Assembly: GCA_028826165.1 (NCBI GenBank)
Contig: JAPDFW010000127.1
Span: forward strand, 85,293-149,292
DNA from: Anaeramoeba ignava BMAN
Taxonomy: Eukaryota; Protista; Anaeramoebae
Length of the DNA stretch: 64,000 nt
Direction of reading: 5' to 3'
Shown: piece by piece, positions 1,373-57,154 of the stretch
Layout of the letters: the number at the start of each line of letters is the position of its first letter
Position numbering within the stretch: position 1 is the first letter of the stretch
Made by a program: the position numbers and the translations under genes
The notes under the pieces: model-generated
Database searches by the model: none
What the model was told of the DNA's origin: nothing
Seen by the model: the letters and a program-made list of their open reading frames with translations, nothing else

Positions 1373-2000
1373 TTAAAAAGAAAATTAAAAAATGAAAAAA
1401 ATGAAAAAAATGAAAATAAAATTAAAAAAAAATTTAAATTTCAAAAAGCAAAAAAAATTATTCAAAAATTGAATTAGATCAATCTAAAATTTACAATTTA
1501 AAAAAAATAAAAGGGGGTTAAAAAGACAAAATTCTGTTTTTTTTTCTTATTTTTTATTTATTTTATTTTTATTTTTATTTTCTCCTTTTTTTTTCTCCTT
1601 TTTTTTTTTCCACTTAATCATTAGTTAATCAATTAGGAAATAATTTAATTAATTAATTAATTAGGAAATAATTTAAAAATAATTTGGAAATTAAAAGAAA
1701 TAATAAATAAAAGAAATTTTTCATTTTGATTTCATTTTGATCTTTTTTTTTTTTTAAAAGAAAATTTGATTTTAAATCTTCTTTAAATTTTAGATTAACG
1801 TTTTTTTAATTTTTGGATTTTGGACAACTGGATACAGTTTTTTTTTTAAATTAAAAAGTGATTTATTTTTTTATTTTTTAATTGATCATTTTTTTTCTTT
1901 CTTTTCTTTTATAATTTTTTTTTTTTTTTTAAAATTCTTAGTTTTTATTTTTTTTCTTTTTATTTTCTTTTTATTTTTACTGTTATTTTTTTTATTACAA

Positions 2001-5000
2001 ATGAAATATATTTTAGAAAAAAAAATTGGAGCAGGAGCTTTTGGTTTAATTTATCAAGGAAAAGATAAAAATACAAATGAAAAAGTTGCAATAAAAATTG
2101 TAAAAAATTAAATTTAATTAAAAATTAAATTAAAATTTAAATTATTTTATTAAAAAATAAAACAACTCAGGAAAACAATAAAACAAAATATCCTCAATTA
2201 TTTCATGAAAACAGAATTTATCGAATACTTTCTGGCGGAGTTGGTATTCCTAAAATCAAATGGTTTGGTTCTGAAGGGGATCATAATATTCTTGTTATGG
2301 ATCTTTTAGGTCCAAGTTTAGAATCTTTATTTCATCAATGTTCAAGAAAATTCTCTTTAAAAACTGTTCTTTTAATTGGTGATCAATTGGTATTAAAAAA
2401 TAAATATTAAATTAAATATTAAAATAAATATTAAAATAAATATTAAATTAAATATTAAAATAAATATGAGTGATTTGAGGCTGATGTGAAAAATTTTTTT
2501 TTGTTTATTTTTTTTCCCTTTTTTAATTAAAATTGAACAAGAAATCTCGATAAAAGCCTCAAATTTTGGTGCTTCCTGAGGCACGATAAAGGTTTATTTC
2601 TTTGAGAATTAGAAAAATTGAATCAAAAAAAATCAATCAAAAAAAATCAATCAAAAATCAATCAAAAAAAAAGAAAAATGAATTAGATTCTTGTCAAAGA
2701 AAAAAGGAATAGAAAGAGTGATTATTTTTTCTTAATCTTCTCTTGTAAAAATCATCATTGTAAAAGTATCTTCTGTTCTAAAAGGATTCACGGGAAATAT
2801 ATGAGCATCACTTATTCCAAAAAAATTTGAACTAGTTTCGGTTTCTAAGATTTCAGTCCAATAATGACCTTCATTGGCATTTCCAATATGGCGTATTGAT
2901 CCAAGCAATTTCATTTCAGTTTCTTGATTAGGACAACTCTGAAACATGAAAGATTTGACATTGATCTTTTCTTCACATTGAATTTTGGTTCCAATTCTTG
3001 TTGTAGATTGAGTCAAGGAATCATAATAAGTTCTCTTGAAAAAAATAACCAAATATTTAGGAATAGTCAAAAGAGACAATTTAATGGAGCTTTCTACTTT
3101 TTGGTCACAATTTTCACAGTGATAATGTTGAGAGAAATCTAAATCCTTTTCAGCGAAATAATTATCGAGCATTGAAGAAATGCTAATTTCTCCGTTCAAA
3201 ATTGGAAAGCTAATCACAAGACTTGTTTCTTGAGGAAAGGAGTAAGTAAATCTTTTACATTTCTTACATGTCACCTTTTGCACAATACGAATGCGAAAAT
3301 CATTTATTATAGCTCGATTGTGAATATCAAATTCTTGATAAAGAAGATCATATGGAACATTGAAATCTGAAATATTCTCATTTGATATTAAATCCATCAA
3401 GGAAACAAAAAATTCATGTATATCTTGTTCATTAGTGTTGGAAAATTGAGTCACATGTTCTCCTATTACCTTTCTTAGTGGAGTTATATTAATCGATTCT
3501 TCTGAAGATTGTAAAATATCGCTCAAAGTTTCAGAAATATCACCTAAACCTAATAGTTCAATTACAGAAGTTCTTAAAAGCACTTGAATGATGGAAGCGA
3601 TATAGCATGAATTGTGTGAATTTGGAATCTTTCTTAAATTCTAATCAAAAATTAAAATGAGAAAATCAAAAAGAAAAAAATAATAAAAGAAGAATTTTCT
3701 TACTCCTGTTTTGCAAATGGATATTGATGATGTAAAATTCTTTTGTTTTGGGAGATTATCTTGAAATTTTGAAATGCGCAAATTTTTGATTTCTTCTTTT
3801 TCTTCAAATTCAATTTTTCTCTTGACTTGTTGATGTTTTCTGGAAGAACTTCGTAGATTTCCATTCATATGATTCATTTCCTTCATCTTCTTTTCTCTTT
3901 GTGAATGAAATTTTTGTGTTTCATTTGGAATCACCTTTTCATTTTTGGAATTTGTCATTTGAGTATTAAAGAAAGGAATAGAATAATTCTCCTGAATTAA
4001 TGCTGAATTTTGTTTAATTCCAAATTCTTTCTCTTGAAAAATTTGTTCAATTATAGGTATTCTTCTTTTTCGAAAATTGGTGTTTGGCATTCTTGCAGTT
4101 TTCAAGTTTCCTTTTAAGAAAATAAAAATGTGTGATTTTTTAATTTTTGCAATTGGATTCTTGTAAAGAAATTTGAGTGCTCTATTCACATTCAAAATAA
4201 TTGGTGTTGTGTTACTAAGTTGAGATAAATAATCAAAAAGTAAATTAATAGTTGTAATATCCCCAAAATTTGCCTTATTCCTTGATATGTTACCAAAATG
4301 ACGATCAGACATATGTTTAGCGTGGTTTCTAAGAAAGAAAATTACCTTAATATCTAAAAATTGCGAACTAAAAGCATCAAAAATCATCCCCAGAACAAAG
4401 TTATTTTTAATGTGTCCTCCATTATCAGAAAAAATCCTTAGTTTTGATATGTTTAATAGATTTCTTTTATGTTGCCATTCATTGAATTTATATCGAAAAT
4501 CTTGAAAACTTTGAAGAACAAATTGGGAATCCTATAAGAGAAATAGAAAATTAATAGAATCAAAAAGGAATTCAATTTTTAAACTTACTTTAGTTTGATC
4601 CTCTGAAATATAATCGAAATAGAACAACTGTTTTTCAAACTGAATAGTAATATTGAAGATCACCCATGATTTTTTATGATAGAATTCTTGTGTTTCCCAA
4701 TTATCTCGATACTCTTGAAAATTGACTGCAAAGTCCAAGAATAAAATAATTTGATCAAGAAGTTGAATTTCCGATTTGTATAAATTTCTCATTTCAAGAA
4801 CTTTTCTTTGGTGATTCTGCCTTTTTTTCATGATTGGATTAGAACATTTTGGACACTGGAAAAAAAAAGCTGTTGCAGAATGAATTGAAAAATACTTTTG
4901 AAGAAGTGAGCAGAAAGTCCCATATTTAAGATCATTTCCTTTATCCTGTATTTGATTAAAAAGTCTTTTTTTTGTCAAACTTGTGCGGAAAACAGGTATA

Positions 5001-8000
5001 TCTTTTCTGCTGTAAAAATCAATCGTTGTAAATGTTTCTAAATGATCTAAAATTCGAAGGATATTTTTTTCATGATTTGTGAAAACCCATTCTTTTGATT
5101 TTGTTTGAGATTTTAGGTAAAATGGAATCTTAAAACGATGATGTTCACAATTTAAATGTCTCTTTAGCTTCCATGAATTTAAATTTTTCAATTCCTTATC
5201 ACAAGAAGAACAAAAAACTTTTTGTGTATCTAAATTATATGAAAGAAATGGATCCTGATCGATCATTTTTTGAGTATTCATTGGCACTTTCTTTCCACTT
5301 TTTGAAATAGAGATTTGAACATTCAAAATAGGAATTTCCTCTGAAGTTATTAGAAGAACTTGTTCTTTAACACAATTTAGGAAGATTACAAGTTGTGAAT
5401 TGTTTGAAATACGAACAGTTTTATCTTGAAAGAGATAGGTGAATGCTTGAATCTTTTGTCGAATATTGAAGTTATCTTTCACATCTTTAATTAAGGTTTT
5501 AAAGTTTAGGATCTTTTCAGCATCAAACACACAAAAATTTCCTTGAAAACGAATAAAAAAAGCTTCATTTAAAAGAAAAATGAATTGAGATTTTATCAAA
5601 AATTCCTTTTGAAATCCTCAAAAAGTGGACATTGATTTAATTAAAAAGAAAGAAAAGGAAAAATCTTCTTGATCTTATTTCAAAAAGAAAAACTAAAGAA
5701 AAATTGATTCTTTAAACTATTTGAAGAAAAAGAAATTGAAAAGGAAAAAGTGGACATTGATTTAATTAAAAAAAAGAAAAAGGAAAAAAATCTTCTTGAA
5801 CTTATTTCAAAAAGCAAAGAAAAATTGATTCTTCAATCAAAATACAAATGTCTAATATGTAAAGATATTTTGTAATTGAATTATCGATAAAAACAAATTG
5901 AAAGGGAGAAGAAAAGCAAAATGAAAAATCTGATCTTTTGATTTTTGATTGATTAAAATATGATTCAAAAAAAGTTATTTTAAAAAAGAAGTCTAAAATT
6001 TCTCTTTTATTTTTTTAAGAGATTTAAAAAAGAAGACATATATGAAATTTAAATTCCTTTTTTAAAAAAATTCCTTTATTAATAAAATCAAAAGTAAATA
6101 AATTTGATGAGAATTTTTTGGAACAATATAAAAAAAATCACTCAATAAATTGATTATTTGATATTTTAATTTTGAGGCTCAAGAGGCTTTTTTTTTTATT
6201 GATTTTTTTTGCAACAGAATCACTCATATTAAATTAAATATTAAAATAAATATTAAATTAAATATTAAATTAAATATTAAAATAAATATTAAATTAAATA
6301 TTATAATAAATATTAAATTAAATATTAAAATAAATATTAAATCAAATATTAAATTAAATATTAAATTAAATATTAAATTAAATATTAAATATTTTAGTTG
6401 ACTCGAATTGAATATCTTCATAAAAAAGGTTTCATTCATAGAGATATTAAACCAGATAATTTTTTGATTGGAACTGGAAAACATTCAAATCAAATTTATA
6501 TGATTGATTTTGGTTTATCAAAAAGATACAAAGATCCTGAAACTCATCTTCATATTCCGTATAAGAAAAACAAAAAATTAACAGGAACAGCAAGATATGC
6601 ATCTGTTAATACTCATTTAGGAATTGGTAAATAAAATCTAAATCAAAATTAAAATCAAAATCAAAATCAAAATCAAAATCAAAATTAAAATCAAATTCAA
6701 ATTAAAATTAAAATCAAATTCAAAATCAAAATTAAAATCAAAATTAAAATCAAAATTAAATTCAAAATTAAAATCAAAATTAAAATTAAAATTAAAATTA
6801 AAATCAAAATTAAAATTAAAATTAAAATTCAAAATCAAAATCAAAATCAAAATCAAAATTAAAATCAAATTCAAAATTAAAATTAAAATTAAAATTCAAA
6901 ATCAAAATCAAAATCAAATTCAAAATTAAAATTAAAATTAAAATTCAAAATCAAAATCAAAATCAAAATCAAAATCAAAATTAAAATTAAAATTAAAATC
7001 AAAATCAAAATCAAAATCAAAATCAAAATTAAAATTAAAATCAAAATCAAAATTAAAATCAAAATCAAAATCAAATTCAAATTTAAAATTAAAATTAAAA
7101 TTAAAATTAAAATTAAAATGAAAATCAAAATCAAAATCAAAATTAAAATTAAAATCAAAACATAGAACAAAGTAGAAGAGATGATCTTGAAGGAATTGGA
7201 TATGTTCTTTGTTATTTCCTTTTAGGTTGTCTTCCTTGGCAAGGTCTTAATGCAACAAGTAGAAAACAAAAGTATGAAAGAATTGCAGAAACTAAAATTC
7301 GAACAAGTGTTGAAGAATTAACAAAATCTTTACCAAGTAAAATTGAATTATTATTCTAAAAAATGAAACAATTTATTTATCAATTTTTTTTTTGTTTTTT
7401 TTTATTATTAAAAAAGTGGAATTTTCAATGTATTTATCAGTTGTCAGAAATTTACGTTTTGAAGAAACTCCTGATTATTCTTATTTAAGAAAAATTTTCA
7501 GAGATTTATTTTGCAAAGAAGGATTTTTATATGATGGTATTTTTGATTGGACTCCAAATGATGTAAAAAATTAAAATCAAAATTCATTTATAAAATCAAA
7601 ATTCATTTATAAAATTAAAATTCATTTATAAAATTAAAATTCATTTATAAAATTAAAATTCATTTATAAAATTAAAATTCATTTATAAAATTAAAATTCA
7701 TTTATAAAATTAAAATAGAAACAAACTCATCAATCAGGAAAAAAAGAACAAAAATCTATGATTTTATTGAAAACAAATCAAACTGGAAATGATTCTTTAA
7801 AAAGAAAAAGAATTAATCAATTTGGGAATAACAATAACAATAACAATAACAATAACAATAAGAATCCAAATTTAGAAACTAGTAAAACAAATGATCGAAA
7901 TTCTTCTATTCGTCTTCTTCCAAAAGAAGAATATTTAGGTAAAAGACATCGAGCACAAATCAAAAAAACTCGAACAACTCAAATTTCTCATAATCAAGAA

Positions 8001-45900: not shown

Positions 45901-48900
45901 CTAAGTATTGATAACACTTCTTGGTTCTTCCCAAATGCCCAAGACCCTTCTATCATCACAGCTCCTTTCCCAGGAAAGCTTGTGAGAATTGTCGTTGGAA
46001 ATGGTGAAAATGTTGAAAAAGGAAATGTTGTTGCTGAAATGGAGACAATGAAGATGATCCTTCCTGTCTTCACTAGAGCAAAAGGAACCATTATATTTGT
46101 CAAAGAAGAGGGAGCCATACTTGCTACTGGTGATATCATTGCTTCTCTTAAATTACCCAATTTGGTTCGTCGTGAATCCCTTGAGACATTTCAAGGAACA
46201 TTTCCAAATACTTCAAAACCCCGCATTTACGGAAATAAAATACATCAATCACTTCAGCAATCACTTGAGCGACTCCGCAATATTATGGCAGGTTTCTCAG
46301 CCTCAAAAGAAGTCATTTTTGATGCGCTTTCAATAATAGAAAAAGCTTTTAAAGATGAAACGCTTCCTCTTCTTGAATTCAAAGAAATTCTTTCCAATAT
46401 TACTGAACGAATACCTCTTAAACTAGAGAACCAGTTTGTTTCATTTGAGAAGAATATTCGTGATCGTTTGTTCACAACACAGAATTCTCACATGGATAAT
46501 TCTTTCCAGTACTATCCATGTGGAGAGTCAATTATGGATATTATTGACAGCTATTTAAATTCAATTAAAGATTCAAAAGAAAGAAGATATTTATCTGAAA
46601 TTGTCCAAGATTTATCTGATTTCGCAGATAAATACAAGAATGGTCTTCGTGGCTCATATTGTTCCACTCTTCAATGGTTTCTTGATCAATATTATGACAT
46701 AGAAAGACATTTCCAAGGCGATGAAGATGATCTAATGGTTCTCGAAAGATTGTTCCACTTTTTTGGTAAAAATAAATTTGAACAGATTTATCGTATTTTG
46801 TTTTCTCATTATTCAATTCGTGACAAGAATTCCCTTATCCTTGAAATACTCGCGATTATTTCCCGTGAAAATGATGTTATTGCTTCGCTTTCTTCAAGTC
46901 TTCAAAATCTTTGTTTGCTTCAAAATATGGTCAACTTGCCAGTTTCATTACGGGCAAAACAAATATTAAATCAATATCAAAATAATGAAAGTAACATTGA
47001 TTTGGAATCGATGAAGAAAATGATTTTCCAGAAAGTCCAAGAATATCAACTTACTGAGGATTTGTCTCCTCAAGACGGAAACAAGATCAAAAGTCGTCTT
47101 TATGAGTTGATAAATAAGTTTCTTCCTCTTGTTACAGAGTTAGATATTGTTGAGAAAATTACATCAAGTCTCATTTCTTGTGGTCATTATTCTCATGATC
47201 ATCAAATTCTTGAAATTAACAAAAAGAGGAAAGATCCTTATTTATTAGTTTGTTGGGATTTTTATCGTTTACATCAAAATTTAAATTCAAATATAAATTC
47301 AAATCCAAATTTAGATTTAAATTCAAATTTAAATTCAAATATAAATTCAAATTTAAATTCAAATATAAATTCAAATCCAAATCCAAATACAAATTCAAAT
47401 ATAAATTTAAATTCAAATATAGATTTAAATTCAAATTCAAATATAAATTCAAATTCAAATTCAAATATAAATTCAAATTCAAATTCAAATATAAATTCAA
47501 ATTCAAATTTAAATTCAAATCCAAATCCAAATCCAAATTCAAATTCAAATCCAAATCAAAACAAAATTATTCATCTTGGAATGGTTTCTTTTCTTCAAAC
47601 TCCACATAATTTAACAAGTTATCATTTCGAACAAATTTTGGCAAATTTCCAACCAAAATTAAATCTAAACAAAGGAATCCATTCAAAACCAGGAAACACG
47701 ATAATGATAATCACAACAACATCACAAAAAAATCAAAATCAATTGCATTTCCCAACATTTGATGAAAATCAAGCACAAATATATCAATCAATGGTGAAAC
47801 AATTCTACAATAAACTTATCCAATTGAAAATCAAATCAATCACATTTCTTGTAATTCAAAATGGATTAGAAAGCCCTGGATTCTATACATTCACATCCAA
47901 AATGGATTTTGCAGAAGATAAAACAATTAGACATGTTTATCCACTTTTTGCTAATGATCTTGAATTGCCTCGGTTATCATCTTACAATGTTACTCCTCTT
48001 CATATGAACTGCGCTCATATCCATCTTTATCACGGAGAGTTTTCCTATTCAAAAAACCAAACTCAACCTTCTCGTTTATTTATTCGTTCTGTTCTTCCAA
48101 TTGTCCAACATTTCCAAAACGATCTTCTTCATAGTTTCCATGAAATCATCAAAAAACTCGAGATTCTGCAGTTGAATTCTGTTTTTCGGAAATCAGATTT
48201 TCTTCATATTTTCATTAATATTCTTCCTCTTCTTTCAATTCTTGATGAAAAAGAAACTCAAAAAAATACTTCTGCATTTCTCAAAAAAGTTATTTCTGAA
48301 ATATCTTCCAAAATATCTGCTCAACTTTATAAACTCAAAGTTATTGAAATTGAAATTTATGTGAATATTAGAAATAACGACACATCCAATTCAGAAATAA
48401 CATCACAATCTGAGAAAAATCACTCTGATAAATGCAACCCTCTTGAATCGTCTAGATATAGAATTTTTATTAGTATTTTCTCTCCTTTTAGTCAAGATAT
48501 TGAGGTTTATTCAGAACAAATTTTTGATGGTCAAAAAATATTGAAATGGATTGATGGAACATCACAACATCCAGGTCAATATCATGATAAACCATCACAA
48601 GATCCTTATGGAGAAATCACTCCTATTCAACGCAAACGTGCATTTGCTAAAAAAGCAGGAACAACATATATTTATGATTTCTTGAAATTGTTTCAATGCA
48701 CAATTGAGAAAATTTGGAATGAATTTGTTTTGGTTCATCATTTATCAATAGATTCAATACCAAAAATATTACTTGAATATGAGGAATTTGTTTTACAAGA
48801 GTCTATATTGCCAAATAAAGAGAAAAAATATGACTTAAATTTAATTAAACGTTCTGATGGAAATAATAAAATTGGAATGGTTGCATGGAAAGTGAAAATA

Positions 48901-51695: not shown

Positions 51696-54600
51696 TTAAG
51701 CTTTTGGTTTAATTAAAAGACTTAAACTAGAAATTAAAGTTAAACCAGAGAAAATAAACATTAAAGTGAAATAATGTCCAGTTTTATTATTAATTCCTGA
51801 AGAAATTGAAGGAATTGCCATTGCAGCTGTTGATGAAAAAATTTGAAGAAAACCTAAATGAATTCCAAAATTTTTTTGACCAAAACTTTCACCAACCATA
51901 GTTGGAATTAAGACCAATGTTGTTCCAAAAATAAATCCAACATAAATCAAAAAAATACATCTAAAAACATCAATTGTTTTTCCTTTTTTAGAAACAGCTG
52001 TCAAAATACCAAGAATTAATAATATAACTGAAGATATAAACATAATAAGTGAAAGATATTCTTCTCTTCGATGATTTTTTTTCTTTGTTTTAATTTATTA
52101 ATTTATTAATTTATTAATTTATTTTTAAATTAATTTTAAAAATACTTTCAATAAATCTGAAAAAACTCCACTTAAAAATGATCCAGTTGCATTTGCTACA
52201 GAAAATAAAGTGAGAATAAGATCTGTTAAATCAAAAGAGGAGTTATAAGATTTCCAAATCAAATTAACATCTTTTAAAAAAAAATAAAAGAAAAAAGCAT
52301 TCCACATTTTTTTTTTAAAAAGAAAACAAATTTATAAATATAAATATTAATATTTTACCTGCAATAACAAAAACTCCAACTCCAACGCCAGTAAAAAAAG
52401 AAATTGCATAAATCCAAAATAATCGATTTTTAAGAATTTGTAAAGATTCTTTAAATGAAGCTTTATCCTCTTTTTTTTCTTCAATAATTTCGATTTCATC
52501 AACACAAATTGAAAGTAACTAAAAACAGAAAAAATTTCAATAAAAAATTTGTTTTGTTTTTTGAATAAAATTTTGAATAAAATTTTGAGAATTACTTTTT
52601 CTTTTTCATTATCATTTTCTTTTATCATTTTCTTTATCATTTTCATTTTCATTTTCATTATCATTTTCTTTATCATTTTCTTTTTCATTTTCTTTTTCAT
52701 TTTCTTTATCATTTTCTTTATCTTTTTCTTTATCTTTCTTATCTTTATTTTTCTTATCTTTATTAGATTGAGATTCTGTATCTGTTTCTGATAAAAGATC
52801 AGGTGAATTTGAAAATTTATCTAAATTTTCATTTTCATTAATATTAATATTTCCAAAATTTTCAAAATTTTCTTGATTGGTTTTTGTTATTTTTTTTGTT
52901 CTTCCATAAAGAAATAAACTAAAAGGAATCAAAATAATTCCCATTAAAATTGCAAGAAATCTAACTTCTTTTTTCCAACAAGAATCACCACTACAACCAG
53001 AAACTTTATCATATACTAAAATTTAAAATAATTAAAAAAAAGTCCCGAAAGAAAAAAAAAATTTTTTTAAGAACTTTTTTTTGGAAAAATTTTTGCTTTT
53101 TAAAAATAAAAAGAAAACACAAACAACTATAAAGAGAAACAACTAATCCCATAGAAAGACTCATTGCAGTTCCAACAAGAGACATATTAATACCCAAATA
53201 TTTAAGTGGACTAACTTTAAGAGCTGTACCTAAAGAACAAATAAAACCAGTTCCAAGACCAAAACCAGCCAAAGTAAAAAAAAAAGTGATTGAAGCTTTT
53301 GTTTGAATAAATGTAGCCATTAAAAAACTAAAAACTGCACAAACTCCTCCAATTAAGGATGCTATTTTTGCTCCAAATTTATCATGTAAAAATCCTGCAG
53401 GAATTGTGAAATATAAACCTAACATTTCGAGTGATGTTAAAACTTGAATGAAACCATCATTGTAATGTTCTGTGTTTTGAATTTTAGAACTAATTTTATC
53501 AAAAGCATTCTTTTTTTTTTAAGGAGAAAATTTATATTTTAATTTTATATATATTTATATTTCTAATTGCATTTATATTTATATTTATATTTATATTTAT
53601 ATTTATATTTATATTTATATTTATATTTATATTTATATTTATAATTGTATTTATATTTATATTTATATTTATATTTATATTTATATTTATATTTATATTT
53701 ATATTTATATTTATATTTATATTTATATTTATATTTATATTTATATTTATATTTATATTTATATTTATATTTATATTTATATTTATATTTATATTTATAT
53801 TTATATTTTATTTATTTTTATATTTATATTTATATTTATATTTATATTTATATTTTATTTTATATTTTATTTTTCATATTTATATTTATTTTATATTTAT
53901 ATTTTATATTTATATTTATATTTTTAATTTTATTTATATATATTTTAAAATGTATTTTATATTTATATTTATATTTTTATATTTCATTTATATTTTATAT
54001 TTTATATTTATTTTATATTTTATATTTATATTTATATTTATATTTTATATTTATATTTATATTTTATATTTATATTTATATTTAATTTATATTTATATTT
54101 ATAATTATATTTATATTTATATTTATATTTATATTTATTTATATTTATATTTTATATTTTATATTTTATATTTATATTTATATTTTATATATTTTATATT
54201 TTATATTTATATTTTATTTATATTTTATATTTATTTATATTTATATTTTATATTTATATTTTATATTTCATATTTATATTTTATATTTATAATTACATTT
54301 ATAATTTATATTTATATTATATTTATATTTTATATTTATATTTATATTTTATATTTATATTATATTTTATATTTATATTTATATTTATATTTATATTTAT
54401 ATTTATATTTATATTTTATATTTATATTTATATTTATATTTATATTTATATTTATATTTATATTTTATATTTATATTTATATATTTATATTTATATTTCA
54501 TATTTATATATATTTATATTTTATATTTATATATATTTTATATTTTATATTTTATATTTATATTTATATTTATATTTTATATATTTTTATATTTTATATT

Positions 54601-57154
54601 TTATATTTATATTTCATATTTTTTATATTTTATATTTATATATATTTTATATTTTATATTTCATATTTTTTTATATTTATATTTTATATTTATATTTTAT
54701 ATTTCATATTTATTATTTTATATTTTATATTTTATATTTATTTATATTATATTATAATTTATATTTATATTTTATATTTTTATATTTTATATTTTATATA
54801 TTTATATTTTTATATTTATATTTATATATTTTATATTTATAATTTATATTTATATTTTATATTTATATTTATATTTATATTTTATTTATATTTATATTTT
54901 ATATTTTATATTTACATATATTTATATTTTATATTTTATATTTTATATTTTATATTTTATATTTATATTTATATTTTATATTTATTTTATATTTTATATT
55001 TTATATTTCATATTTTATATTTCATATTTCATTTTATTTTATATTTATATTTATATTTATATTTATATTTATATTTATATTTTATTTTTATATTTATATT
55101 TATATTTCATATTTATATTTTATATTTTTATATTTTATATTTATATTTATATTTTATATTTTTATTTTATATTTTATATTTATATTTTATATTTATATTT
55201 TATATATTTTATATTTATATTTATATTTATATATTTATTTATATTTTATATTTATATATTTTATATTTATATTTATATTTATATTTTTATATATATATTT
55301 ATATATCATATATTTATATATTTTTATATTTTATATTTATTTATATTTATATTTAATATTTATATTTATATTTATATTTTATATATTTCATATTTATATT
55401 TTATATTTCATTTTATATTTATATTTCATATATATATATTTATATATTTTATATTTATATTTTATATTTATATTTATATTTATATTTCATTTTATATACA
55501 TATATTTATATTTCATATTTATATTTATTATTTTATTTTATATTTTATATTTTATATTTATATTTTATATTTATATTTTATATTTCATTATATATTTATA
55601 TTTATTTTATATATATTTATTTATATTTATATTTTATATTTTTATATTTATTTTTATATTTATATTTTATATTTCATATTTCATATATTTATATTTATGT
55701 TTCATATTTTATATTTATTTTATATTTTATATTTATATTATTTATATTTTATATTTTTATTTATTTATATTTTATATTTTTTTATATTTATATTTTATAT
55801 TTTATATTTATATTTATATTTATATTTTATGTTTATATTTATATTTCATTTTTATTTTTATATATTTATTTTTTATTTATATTTATATTTCATATTTTAT
55901 ATATTATATTTATATTTTATATTTATATTTCATTATTTCATTATATATTTATATTTTATATTTATATTTTATATTTTATTTTTTATATATTTATATTTTC
56001 ATATTTGCTATTTATATTTTATATTTATATATTTATATTTTATATTTGTATTTATTTCAATATTTTATATTTTTATATTTATATTTCATATATTTATATT
56101 TATATTTTATATTTATATTTTATATTTATTATATTTTATTTTTATATATATTTTATATTTTATTTTATATTTATATTTATATTTTTTTATATTTATATTA
56201 TTTAATTGTATTTTATATTTTATATATTTTATATTTTGTATTTACATTTCATATTTTATATTTTATATCATTTATATTTATATTTATATTTTGTATTTAT
56301 ATTTATATTTCATTTTGTATTTATATTTATATTTTATATTTATATTCATATTTTATATTTATATTTTATATTTTATATTTTATATTTTTATATATATTTA
56401 TATTTTATTTATATTTATATATTTATATTTTATATTTATATTTTTAATTTAAATTTTATATTTATATTTATATTTATATTTATATTTATATTTATATTTA
56501 TATTTTAAATTTTTATATTTATATTTTAATTATATTTTAATTATATTTTTTAATTTATATTTTATATTTCTAAATTATATTTATATTTATATTTTATATT
56601 TATATTTATATTTATATATTTATATTTATATTTATATTTATATTTTTATATTTTATATTTTTATATTTCAAAATGTATTTATATTTATATTTATATTTAT
56701 ATTTATATTTCAATTGTATTTATATTTCGTATTTATATTTATATTTATATTTATATTTTATATTTATTTTAAAATATTTATATTTATATTTCTAAAATGT
56801 ATTTCTAATTGTATTTTTATATTTTATATTTCTAATTATATTTATATTTCTAATTGTATTTATATTTATATTTATATTTATATTTATATTTATATTTATA
56901 TTTATATTTATATTTATATTTATATTTATATTTATATTTATATTTATATTTATATTTTGTATTTATATTTATATTTTATATTTATATTTATATTTTAATT
57001 GTATTTCTAATTGTATTTATATTTATATTTATATTATTTTTAAATTGTGTGTTGATTAAGATTTTTATACAGGTGCTCCACATAATAAAGAAATAATAAT
57101 TGCAGAAATTATTTGTAAAACTTGAAACCAACCAAATTTATTTCGAGTTTGCAT
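51696..57154 (-). CDS. MFS transporter (nodulin-like/OxlT-like), multi-exon, first exon 57154-57071
   Basis: TM helices with the motif-A variant [18 protein letters not shown] and [14 protein letters not shown]. Intron 57070-53510 splices exon 1 (..LLCGAP) in frame to NAFDKISS...MLGLYF. Confidence 0.8.
53510..57070 (-). repeat. 3.56-kb intron almost entirely (TATATT)n, degenerate in the middle
   Basis: Nearly pure A/T. Minus-strand GT at 57070-57069 and AG at 53511-53510. Confidence 0.9.

Follow-up and report, generated by a model that had tools for sequence, protein, structure and literature searches.

Does a single mobile element of Anaeramoeba ignava BMAN encode, within one protein, both an enzyme that moves DNA and a deubiquitinase of the USP class, and what would the deubiquitinase do for transposition? 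The question is raised by an element on the minus strand of a 64,000-nucleotide stretch of contig JAPDFW010000127.1 (assembly GCA_028826165.1, positions 85,293 to 149,292 of the forward strand), which is referred to here in its whole length as the window and to which all coordinates refer unless another contig is named. Mobile elements have repeatedly acquired ubiquitin or SUMO proteases, namely Ulp1, OTU and tegument-like VTD domains. The USPs are the best understood deubiquitinase class. A first-pass annotation, made from the letters of the window and its open reading frames (ORFs), had proposed that three ORFs are spliced into a transposase fused to a USP. Taking three parts of the answer together, namely that this is a genuine transposon, that it is of the Sola2 kind and that its transposase and USP are fused in frame, we hold the whole to be highly probable.

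We searched the A. ignava genome (42.8 Mb, 147 contigs) and found six copies of the 3.76-kb element, 98-100% identical, on six contigs (family A; contigs other than that of the window are denoted C1, C24 and so on). The inverted ends and ATAT duplication initially read from the window copy recur as ATAT-GAGTGATT...AATCACTC-ATAT in every family-A copy whose 5' end is recognisable (five copies), the flanks being unrelated. A genome-wide count gives exactly five perfect copies of the 5' end and six of the 3' end, each of the latter followed by ATAT. The satellite period into which the element inserted (12 or 18) is exactly regained in three insertions once the element and one ATAT are removed, and for the window copy the period so regained is 12 bp. 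Because the satellite period returns with one ATAT removed, ATAT is taken to be a 4-bp target duplication. The first-pass annotation had proposed a search for other copies with the same ends and with different 4-bp duplications; the copies exist, but no duplication other than ATAT was found in the genome search, in which all insertions of family A and of the related families B and C described below use ATAT. That the element is mobile follows from its several copies, its inverted ends, the target duplications and the satellites restored on its removal; it is a genuine cut-and-paste DNA transposon of the autonomous type that has moved recently in A. ignava. Recent activity is seen in two families, A and B, each with 5-6 near-identical copies.

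A domesticated host gene family, that is, an immobile USP with a transposase-derived DNA-binding part, would fit the GenBank labels of the products, which are those of plain ubiquitin carboxyl-terminal hydrolases, and the single match that C40 and C26, which bear paralogues of the element, each gave in protein searches of their own genome. However, families A and B each number 5-6 near-identical copies, which occupy unrelated sites, have inverted ends and are flanked by duplications, several copies are frameshifted as in a decaying transposon family, and even the C40 copy has terminal inverted repeats (TIRs) and ATAT flanks. We therefore give next to no credence to domestication.

The three minus-strand ORFs are joined in frame by two phase-0 GT-AG introns (Table 1), just as first proposed, and GenBank models of sister copies share the junctions. 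The splice sites are invariant in an alignment of the six family-A copies. The homologue of intron 1 is annotated in GenBank protein P0001, encoded by the C40 copy, and is absent from a paralogue on C142, in which the core is one ORF. The intron 2 junction, KTG/NLRK, is used identically by GenBank model P0010, an 852-aa family-A protein of the C105 copy that starts MKLFFIRF. From these features we infer that both introns are spliced. The motifs IFSDNGGH and NSHNSCY lie upstream of the first start codons of the mechanical ORFs; therefore, the ORF list misses both, and they are present as the first reading of the locus had claimed. The protein length of ~915 aa given at that stage did not hold, as it had been counted from a TTG. 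The real ATG at 5568-5566 is out of frame in the window copy, because the T run that follows it at 5561-5555 has seven residues instead of the eight present in C1, C24, C105 and C80. Only C1 and C24 are fully open, encoding 327 + 276 + 302 = 905 aa, and C105, C80 and C59 carry frameshifts in exons 1 or 2, while the USP exon is open in 6/6 copies. In its assembled form the window copy is unlikely to yield the complete protein, for which it would have to rely on the intact copies C1 and C24.

Table 1. Positions in the window of the element, its ends, its predicted gene and the surrounding host intron
Feature	Position	Strand	Description or basis
Element (family A copy), assigned to Sola2	2468-6225	minus	Repeat copies, inverted ends, duplication
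5' TIR, GAGTGATT	6218-6225	minus	8-bp perfect
3' TIR, AATCACTC on element strand	2468-2475	plus	8-bp perfect inverted repeat
5'-side target-site duplication, ATAT	6226-6229		Read directly; in 5/5 family-A copies with intact 5' end
3'-side target-site duplication, ATAT	2464-2467		Read directly
Subterminal copy of terminal 8-mer	6136-6143	minus	82 nt inside 5' end
Subterminal copy of terminal 8-mer	2716-2723	plus	Directly past stop codon
Predicted exon 1	4589-5568	minus	ATG 5568-5566, PB1-like domain, BED finger, CxxC...H motif, first Asp
Predicted intron 1	4532-4588	minus	57 nt, phase 0, GTAAGT...TAG
Predicted exon 2	3704-4531	minus	Second and third Asp, rest of RNase H-like core, linker
Predicted intron 2	3641-3703	minus	63 nt, phase 0, GTAAG...TAG; between linker and USP domain
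Predicted exon 3	2732-3640	minus	USP/UCH domain; stop 2734-2732
First catalytic Asp	4735-4733 (codon)	minus	Exon 1; invariant in 55 aligned relatives
Second catalytic Asp, IFSDNGGH	4426-4424 (codon)	minus	Exon 2
Third catalytic Asp	4306-4304 (codon)	minus	Exon 2
USP Cys box, NSHNSCY	3607-3605 (Cys codon)	minus	Aligned to cellular USPs
USP His box, GHY	2866-2864 (His codon)	minus	Exon 3
USP downstream Asp	2809-2807 (codon)	minus	Exon 3
Host intron, casein-kinase-1-like gene	2393-6397	plus	Translations and splice sites

If intron 2 were retained, translation would stop at the TAG at 3643-3641, and transposase and USP would be separate products, the USP being a passenger that is expressed alone or is silent. 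Unspliced exon 2 does run into this in-frame stop. However, exon 3 lacks a start codon ahead of the Cys box, and a USP made on its own would therefore have no nucleophile; the frame, phase and GT-AG ends are kept in six copies and in family B, with GenBank models using the same junction; and in C40 the core and the USP share one uninterrupted ORF. Separate products are in our judgment very improbable.

The in-frame fusion recurs in paralogues. In six-frame protein searches of the genome, from which the identities given here are taken, a core homologue is directly followed by a USP homologue in family B (C96, C48, C90, C93 and C105; core 36-37% identical over its full length, 42-44% in partial matches, USP 30-40%), in family C (C40; core 33%, USP 23%) and in the C26 lineage (core 33%, USP 25%, or 40% over the first 62 residues). 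The five family-B copies are 97-99% identical and read ATAT-GAGAGATTCGAGGCAC...CTTTCTCTC-ATAT, with termini also given as GAGAGATT...TCTCTC and with ATAT in 5/5; the C90 copy has stops in its USP. The C40 element spans 4.63 kb and has a 13-bp imperfect TIR and ATAT flanks (1/1). Its second and third core Asp, linker and entire USP lie in a single uninterrupted 567-aa ORF, which with an upstream exon makes up the 973-aa GenBank protein P0001; used as a protein-search query, this ORF returned itself plus ordinary USPs and nothing else. A family-B product is likewise present in GenBank (P0011, 834 aa), and P0001, P0010 and P0011 are all named merely "ubiquitin carboxyl-terminal hydrolase". Because the fusion is one continuous ORF in C40 and appears in three GenBank models, it is no artefact of our splice model. 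Since these lineages have diverged to 23-40% identity with the catalytic residues kept, the transposase-USP fusion is old.

The C142 paralogue (L047:4296-7802, minus strand) is a single intronless ORF of 1168 aa with the same N-terminal domain, finger and core, with long N/Q-rich tracts and with a C-terminal CCHC knuckle where the others have the USP; ends of a C142 element were not found. A tree built from the exon-2 region unites the four USP-bearing lineages and one degenerate A. ignava fragment in a single group (SH-aLRT 85), outside which C142 and all metagenomic relatives are placed. Because the USP-bearing lineages group together on this tree, the data are compatible with a single gain of the USP.

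Other traces of the family occur in the genome. Two older, degenerate fragments 3 kb apart on C73 (208480-208908 and 211393-211821) have 83-84% DNA identity to exon 2 and contain stops. A further degenerate fragment, C67:24557-25821, is annotated as hypothetical protein P0013, and no adjacent USP was detected there. The A. ignava protein P0025 (KAJ5076628.1, 744 aa) has a Phage_integrase tyrosine-recombinase match at residues 122-316 and a match to the Sola2 core profile at residues 626-740 (E=9e-19); it may be a chimeric gene model or else a Crypton-like element that adjoins a Sola2 fragment or has fused with it.

The copies were also compared for signs of selection. The ratio of nonsynonymous to synonymous polymorphism (pN/pS) among them is 0.20 in exon 2, 0.20 in exon 3 and 0.85 in exon 1 (few changes). 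Against an expected share of 0.2, synonymous changes account for 7 of 13 in exon 2, which encodes the core (P=0.005), and for 10 of 18 in the USP exon (P=0.0009); the Cys codon of the USP is itself polymorphic between the synonymous TGC and TGT. Both the core exon and the USP exon are under purifying selection.

The USP exon was recognized by Pfam, for which the exons were searched separately. Exon 3 matches the UCH family (PF00443) with E=1.4e-26 and 94.1 bits, above the curated cut-off of 23.9, over positions 4-239 of the 254 in the profile, and P0001 matches it with E=2.9e-37. The nucleophilic Cys, the GHY box and the downstream Asp that had been pointed out at the start are all intact, and exon 3 further contains the landmarks EQDIHEF and a CxxC...CxxC zinc ribbon. 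Its sequence matches in the PDB are the catalytic domains of USP21, USP15, USP8 and USP46. Four lineages, whose USPs are 21-40% identical to that of the window in the four-lineage alignment (23-40% in six-frame matches), have all preserved the QQD-EF motif, both zinc-ribbon CxxC pairs and the oxyanion Asn together with the Cys, the His and the final Asp; the Cys box is likewise kept in C26. A protein search of the A. ignava genome found no close cellular donor, the best non-element USPs being 19-33% identical to that of the element. The absence of a close host donor, the retained catalytic residues and the pN/pS of 0.20 suggest that the capture of the USP is old and that the domain has been maintained.

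It is conceivable that the USP was retained in an inactive form, either as a ubiquitin-binding or scaffold module or as a recent host capture now in decay. The family-A Cys box reads NSHNSCY and not the canonical GNTCF/Y, the N-D or D-D of most USPs is replaced in family A by S-D, and the family-B copy on C90 has stops in its USP, as noted above. However, lineages with no more than 21-40% identity all retain the Cys, His, Asp, oxyanion Asn and four zinc-ribbon Cys, pN/pS is low and no host USP is close enough to be a recent donor. We consider an inactive USP unlikely.

The transposase part was expected from the first-pass annotation to have a D-D-D core of the Sola superfamily. An AlphaFold2 model built from an alignment of the paralogue cores has the order b1-b2-b3-a1-b4-a2-b5-a3 of an RNase H-like fold, with the three Asp on b1, just after b4 and on a3, the helix after b5. 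The best Foldseek matches of this model are the ISCth4 transposase and the HIV/SIV integrase catalytic cores (probability 1.0), followed by IstA and Mos1, and the D-D-D core is thus borne out. The core is followed in exon 2 by a basic, low-complexity linker rich in K, E and N that carries a conserved RKRRIPII motif. An exhaustive HMMER search with the core alignment yielded 587 proteins at E<=0.001, with 79 of them at E<=1e-10; in an alignment of 55 relatives two of the Asp never vary, and the third, like an H-G pair, is almost invariant. A Pfam scan for additional domains covered 125 of the 587, 112 of which are from outside Anaeramoeba, and found DUF7869 in 20 of these 112. Pfam gave no match in exon 2 or in the C142 core. 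A search of the ESM Atlas with the core led to eukaryotic DUF7869 clusters, a second such search gave no usable match, and a literature search found no papers on DUF7869. As a protein-search query, the C40 transposase region returned itself alone, and a protein search with the 55-sequence profile was swamped by USP candidates.

The three Asp of the window core are spaced D(83)D(39)D. The Sola2 transposases of Dictyostelium fasciculatum and Polysphondylium pallidum show MDFKEN, FWSDGAKHFKS and YHGKSDVDRHF with the spacing D(86)D(42)D (PMC3627910, supplement), and the first of these motifs is part of CPxC...H...(L/I)(M/C)DFKEN (PMC3627910). The TIRs of the elements themselves measure 12-13 bp, their 4-bp duplications follow AWWT and include ATAT, and DFa-2 starts with GAGC and ends with GCTC (PMC3627910). 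The consensus of the HMMER relatives is the same as these dictyostelid motifs, and 37 relatives carry DFKEN; the window core agrees less well with the cores of Sola1 and Sola3 as printed in PMC3985635. Because its motifs, spacing, GAG termini and AWWT/ATAT duplications match those of the published elements, we file the element under Sola2, which makes the original assignment to Sola more precise. Membership is supported by the D-D-D triad on an RNase H-like fold, the 4-bp AT-rich duplication and the short TIR, the comparison with reference Sola2 elements having been made by printed motifs and spacing.

The same features might instead belong to a separate, unnamed superfamily, either a DUF7869 clade or one nearer to Zator/ISAzo13, with which Sola2 merely shares D-D-D and 4-bp duplications. 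The DFAENY motif of Hydra Sola2-1_HM occurs in none of the listed relatives (up to 150), 11% of the members of one ESM Atlas DUF7869 cluster also match PF07592 (ISAzo13), and reference Sola2 elements were compared by motif instead of by direct score. However, the dictyostelid Sola2 motifs are the very consensus of the relatives, published Sola2 elements also have AWWT/ATAT duplications and GAG...CTC ends, and PF07592 was matched at E<=0.01 in none of the Pfam-scanned relatives. Zator reportedly makes 3-bp duplications, which we count against a Zator reading. A superfamily distinct from Sola2 therefore appears to us quite unlikely.

Relatives without the USP allow the fusion to be placed in a wider context. 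UCH was found in 0 of the 112 non-Anaeramoeba relatives in the Pfam scan, and literature searches found no earlier report of a transposase-USP/UCH fusion. The closest non-Anaeramoeba relatives come from environmental assemblies, on contigs of 2.6-3.3 kb. These metagenomic elements (L053-L058, encoding P0014-P0016) each have one intronless transposase of 400-520 aa, and no UCH-bearing gene was found in the ~0.6-1 kb downstream of the transposase genes. The complete ones (L053, L054, L055, L056 and L058; ENA), one of which is from groundwater, have ~2.6 kb between their ends and come from genomes of 37-46% GC. Their ends read ATAT-GAGTGATGGTAG (12-bp TIR), ATAT-GAGAGAAG or ATAT-GAGAAAAGGGTACGAAAACGGC (22-bp TIR), with TIRs of 8-22 bp overall, and the terminus GAGTGAT of L053/L054 is the same as in the window element. 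Because they are shared with USP-less elements, the GAG terminus and the ATAT target can be regarded as traits of the clade. The metagenomic elements thus resemble ours in core family (E=1e-31 to the profile), ATAT flanks and GAG(T/A)GA termini, but they are smaller, intronless and without a USP, and they likely show the ancestral state. The USP would then be an addition, encountered in A. ignava alone among the relatives scanned.

Two further domains precede the core. The first 90 residues (about 5568-5290) are predicted to form a beta-grasp domain of the order b1-b2-a1-b3-b4-a2-b5, modelled by AlphaFold2 with a predicted local distance difference test score (pLDDT) of 83-94 over residues 1-70. 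Foldseek matched it to the PB1 domains of NBR1, MAP2K5/MEKK, Par6/aPKC and Cdc24 and then to ubiquitin and NEDD8, the PB1 matches having target TM-scores of 0.66-0.75 and E-values of merely ~3e-3; no Pfam PB1 match was obtained in the exon scans or the paralogue scan. This PB1-like domain is common to the USP-less C142 paralogue. It is followed at 5233-5141 (exon-1 residues 123-153) by a BED zinc finger, CxxC...HxxxxH, for which the Pfam zf-BED match passes marginally (21.7 bits against a cut-off of 20.6, E=2e-4); the same pattern is found in P0010 and in the paralogues.

Several points weigh against the reading of a Sola2 transposon with an in-frame USP. Just 2/6 copies are fully open, and the counts behind the selection estimates are small. 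The evidence for the predicted splicing consists of a maintained frame, conserved splice sites and gene models made by others, which may be purely computational. ATAT is palindromic and always the same, so that the duplication is separable from a 12-bp TIR solely by the satellite-period argument. Confidence in the core model is moderate (mean pLDDT 66), Pfam gives nothing for the window core, and DUF7869 is present in only a minority of the scanned relatives. Finally, the Sola2 assignment draws on motifs, spacing, ends, shared relatives and printed references rather than on an alignment score.

On the reading that we prefer, the single three-exon gene would produce, in its intact copies, a 905-aa transposase that cuts and rejoins DNA through its D-D-D core, excising the element and reinserting it at ATAT, with duplication of those 4 bp. 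The BED finger probably binds the terminal and subterminal GAGTGATT sites, and the PB1-like domain probably serves oligomerisation or pairing of the enzyme. The USP would strip ubiquitin, most likely from the transposase or the transpososome, and thereby protect them from proteasomal turnover; alternatively, it might act at the donor or target site, on chromatin or repair factors that carry ubiquitin. A comparable role has been proposed for the OTU/VTD domains of Helitrons (PMC9741609) and for Ulp1/OTU in Ginger1 (PMC2836005). We lean somewhat towards a USP that is an active deubiquitinase serving transposition. We suggest only tentatively, with our doubts outweighing our expectation, that it acts as a counter-measure to ubiquitin-dependent control of transposition, be it on the transposase or transpososome or on ubiquitinated chromatin where the target is AT-rich, perhaps together with the ubiquitin-like PB1 domain of the same protein.

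The element lies antisense within an intron of a casein-kinase-1-like gene, whose exons were examined at window 1900-2392 and 6398-7600 on the plus strand. The upstream exon ends ...LLIGDQL/gt at 2392 and the next begins ag/ at 6398. The insertion is inside the 12-bp satellite of this intron, which measures 4005 nt with the element and would have ~243 nt of satellite without the element and one ATAT. The LILI, NFNF and IFNL ORFs listed on the minus strand at 6224-7170 and 2393-2584 are translations of AT-rich satellite and not genes. Further into the window, 54001-56000 comprises 2 kb of almost pure A/T with 1.5% G+C and strong skews.

Within the element, the inner pair of terminal 8-mers is inverted like the outer one. 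GAGTGATT has 8 matches in the window, against 1.74 expected, with 4 inside the element; two more sites, at 48418 and 48615, fall in ordinary coding-like sequence. Near-matches to the 5' end that follow ATTT on C60, C64, C93 and C131 were rejected as chance 11-mers with no similarity beyond, and no family of miniature inverted-repeat transposable elements with these ends was found in the genome search. The 5' untranslated part contains a tandem repeat (5693-5816) whose copy number varies among the copies, giving a 148-column indel block in their alignment, and the 3' part has variable TTGATTGATTTTTT-type repeats (2607-2671), with matches among the simple repeats of many other loci, the 3' part of family B being one of them.

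Because GenBank names the products plain ubiquitin hydrolases and Pfam offers only DUF7869 for the core, such elements are invisible to routine annotation. If the USP is indeed an active counter-measure, it would be the first USP-class deubiquitinase integral to a transposase, and mobile DNA would have independently recruited yet another ubiquitin-family protease beside OTU, Ulp1 and VTD. Its role is amenable to standard ubiquitin probes and a transposition assay, and the relatives with the same ends and target but no USP provide a natural comparison of elements with and without it.

Among known systems, the dictyostelid Sola2 elements DFa-2 and PPa-1 have the same motif set and spacing, short TIRs, GAG...CTC ends (DFa-2) and ATAT duplications, and they too carry an extra function, Fanzor1 (PMC3627910). 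In A. ignava, however, the extra function is a USP fused in frame and not a separate gene, the protein also has a BED finger and, at its N-terminus, a PB1-like domain, the element measures 3.8 kb compared with 10-15 kb, and the target is strictly ATAT in each insertion seen. Ginger1 transposons carry Ulp1 and OTU (PMC2836005), and Helitrons/Helentrons carry OTU and VTD domains (PMC9741609). These share with the A. ignava element a papain-fold protease for ubiquitin or ubiquitin-like proteins, with intact catalytic residues, inside a transposon protein, and by analogy such cargo presumably shields transposition proteins from ubiquitin-dependent control. Here, by contrast, the protease is of the C19/USP class and not C48, OTU or VTD, and the transposon superfamily is another. 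With the cellular enzymes USP21, USP15, USP8 and USP46, the element's domain has in common the Cys box, QQD-EF, the zinc ribbon in the fingers, the His box and the final Asp, but its identity to them is only ~20-30%, and it consists of a minimal catalytic domain of 300 aa attached to an enzyme that cuts DNA. Thus, while Sola2 transposons and ubiquitin-family proteases on mobile DNA were already known, the peptidase class and the set of domains brought together in this protein appear to be new.

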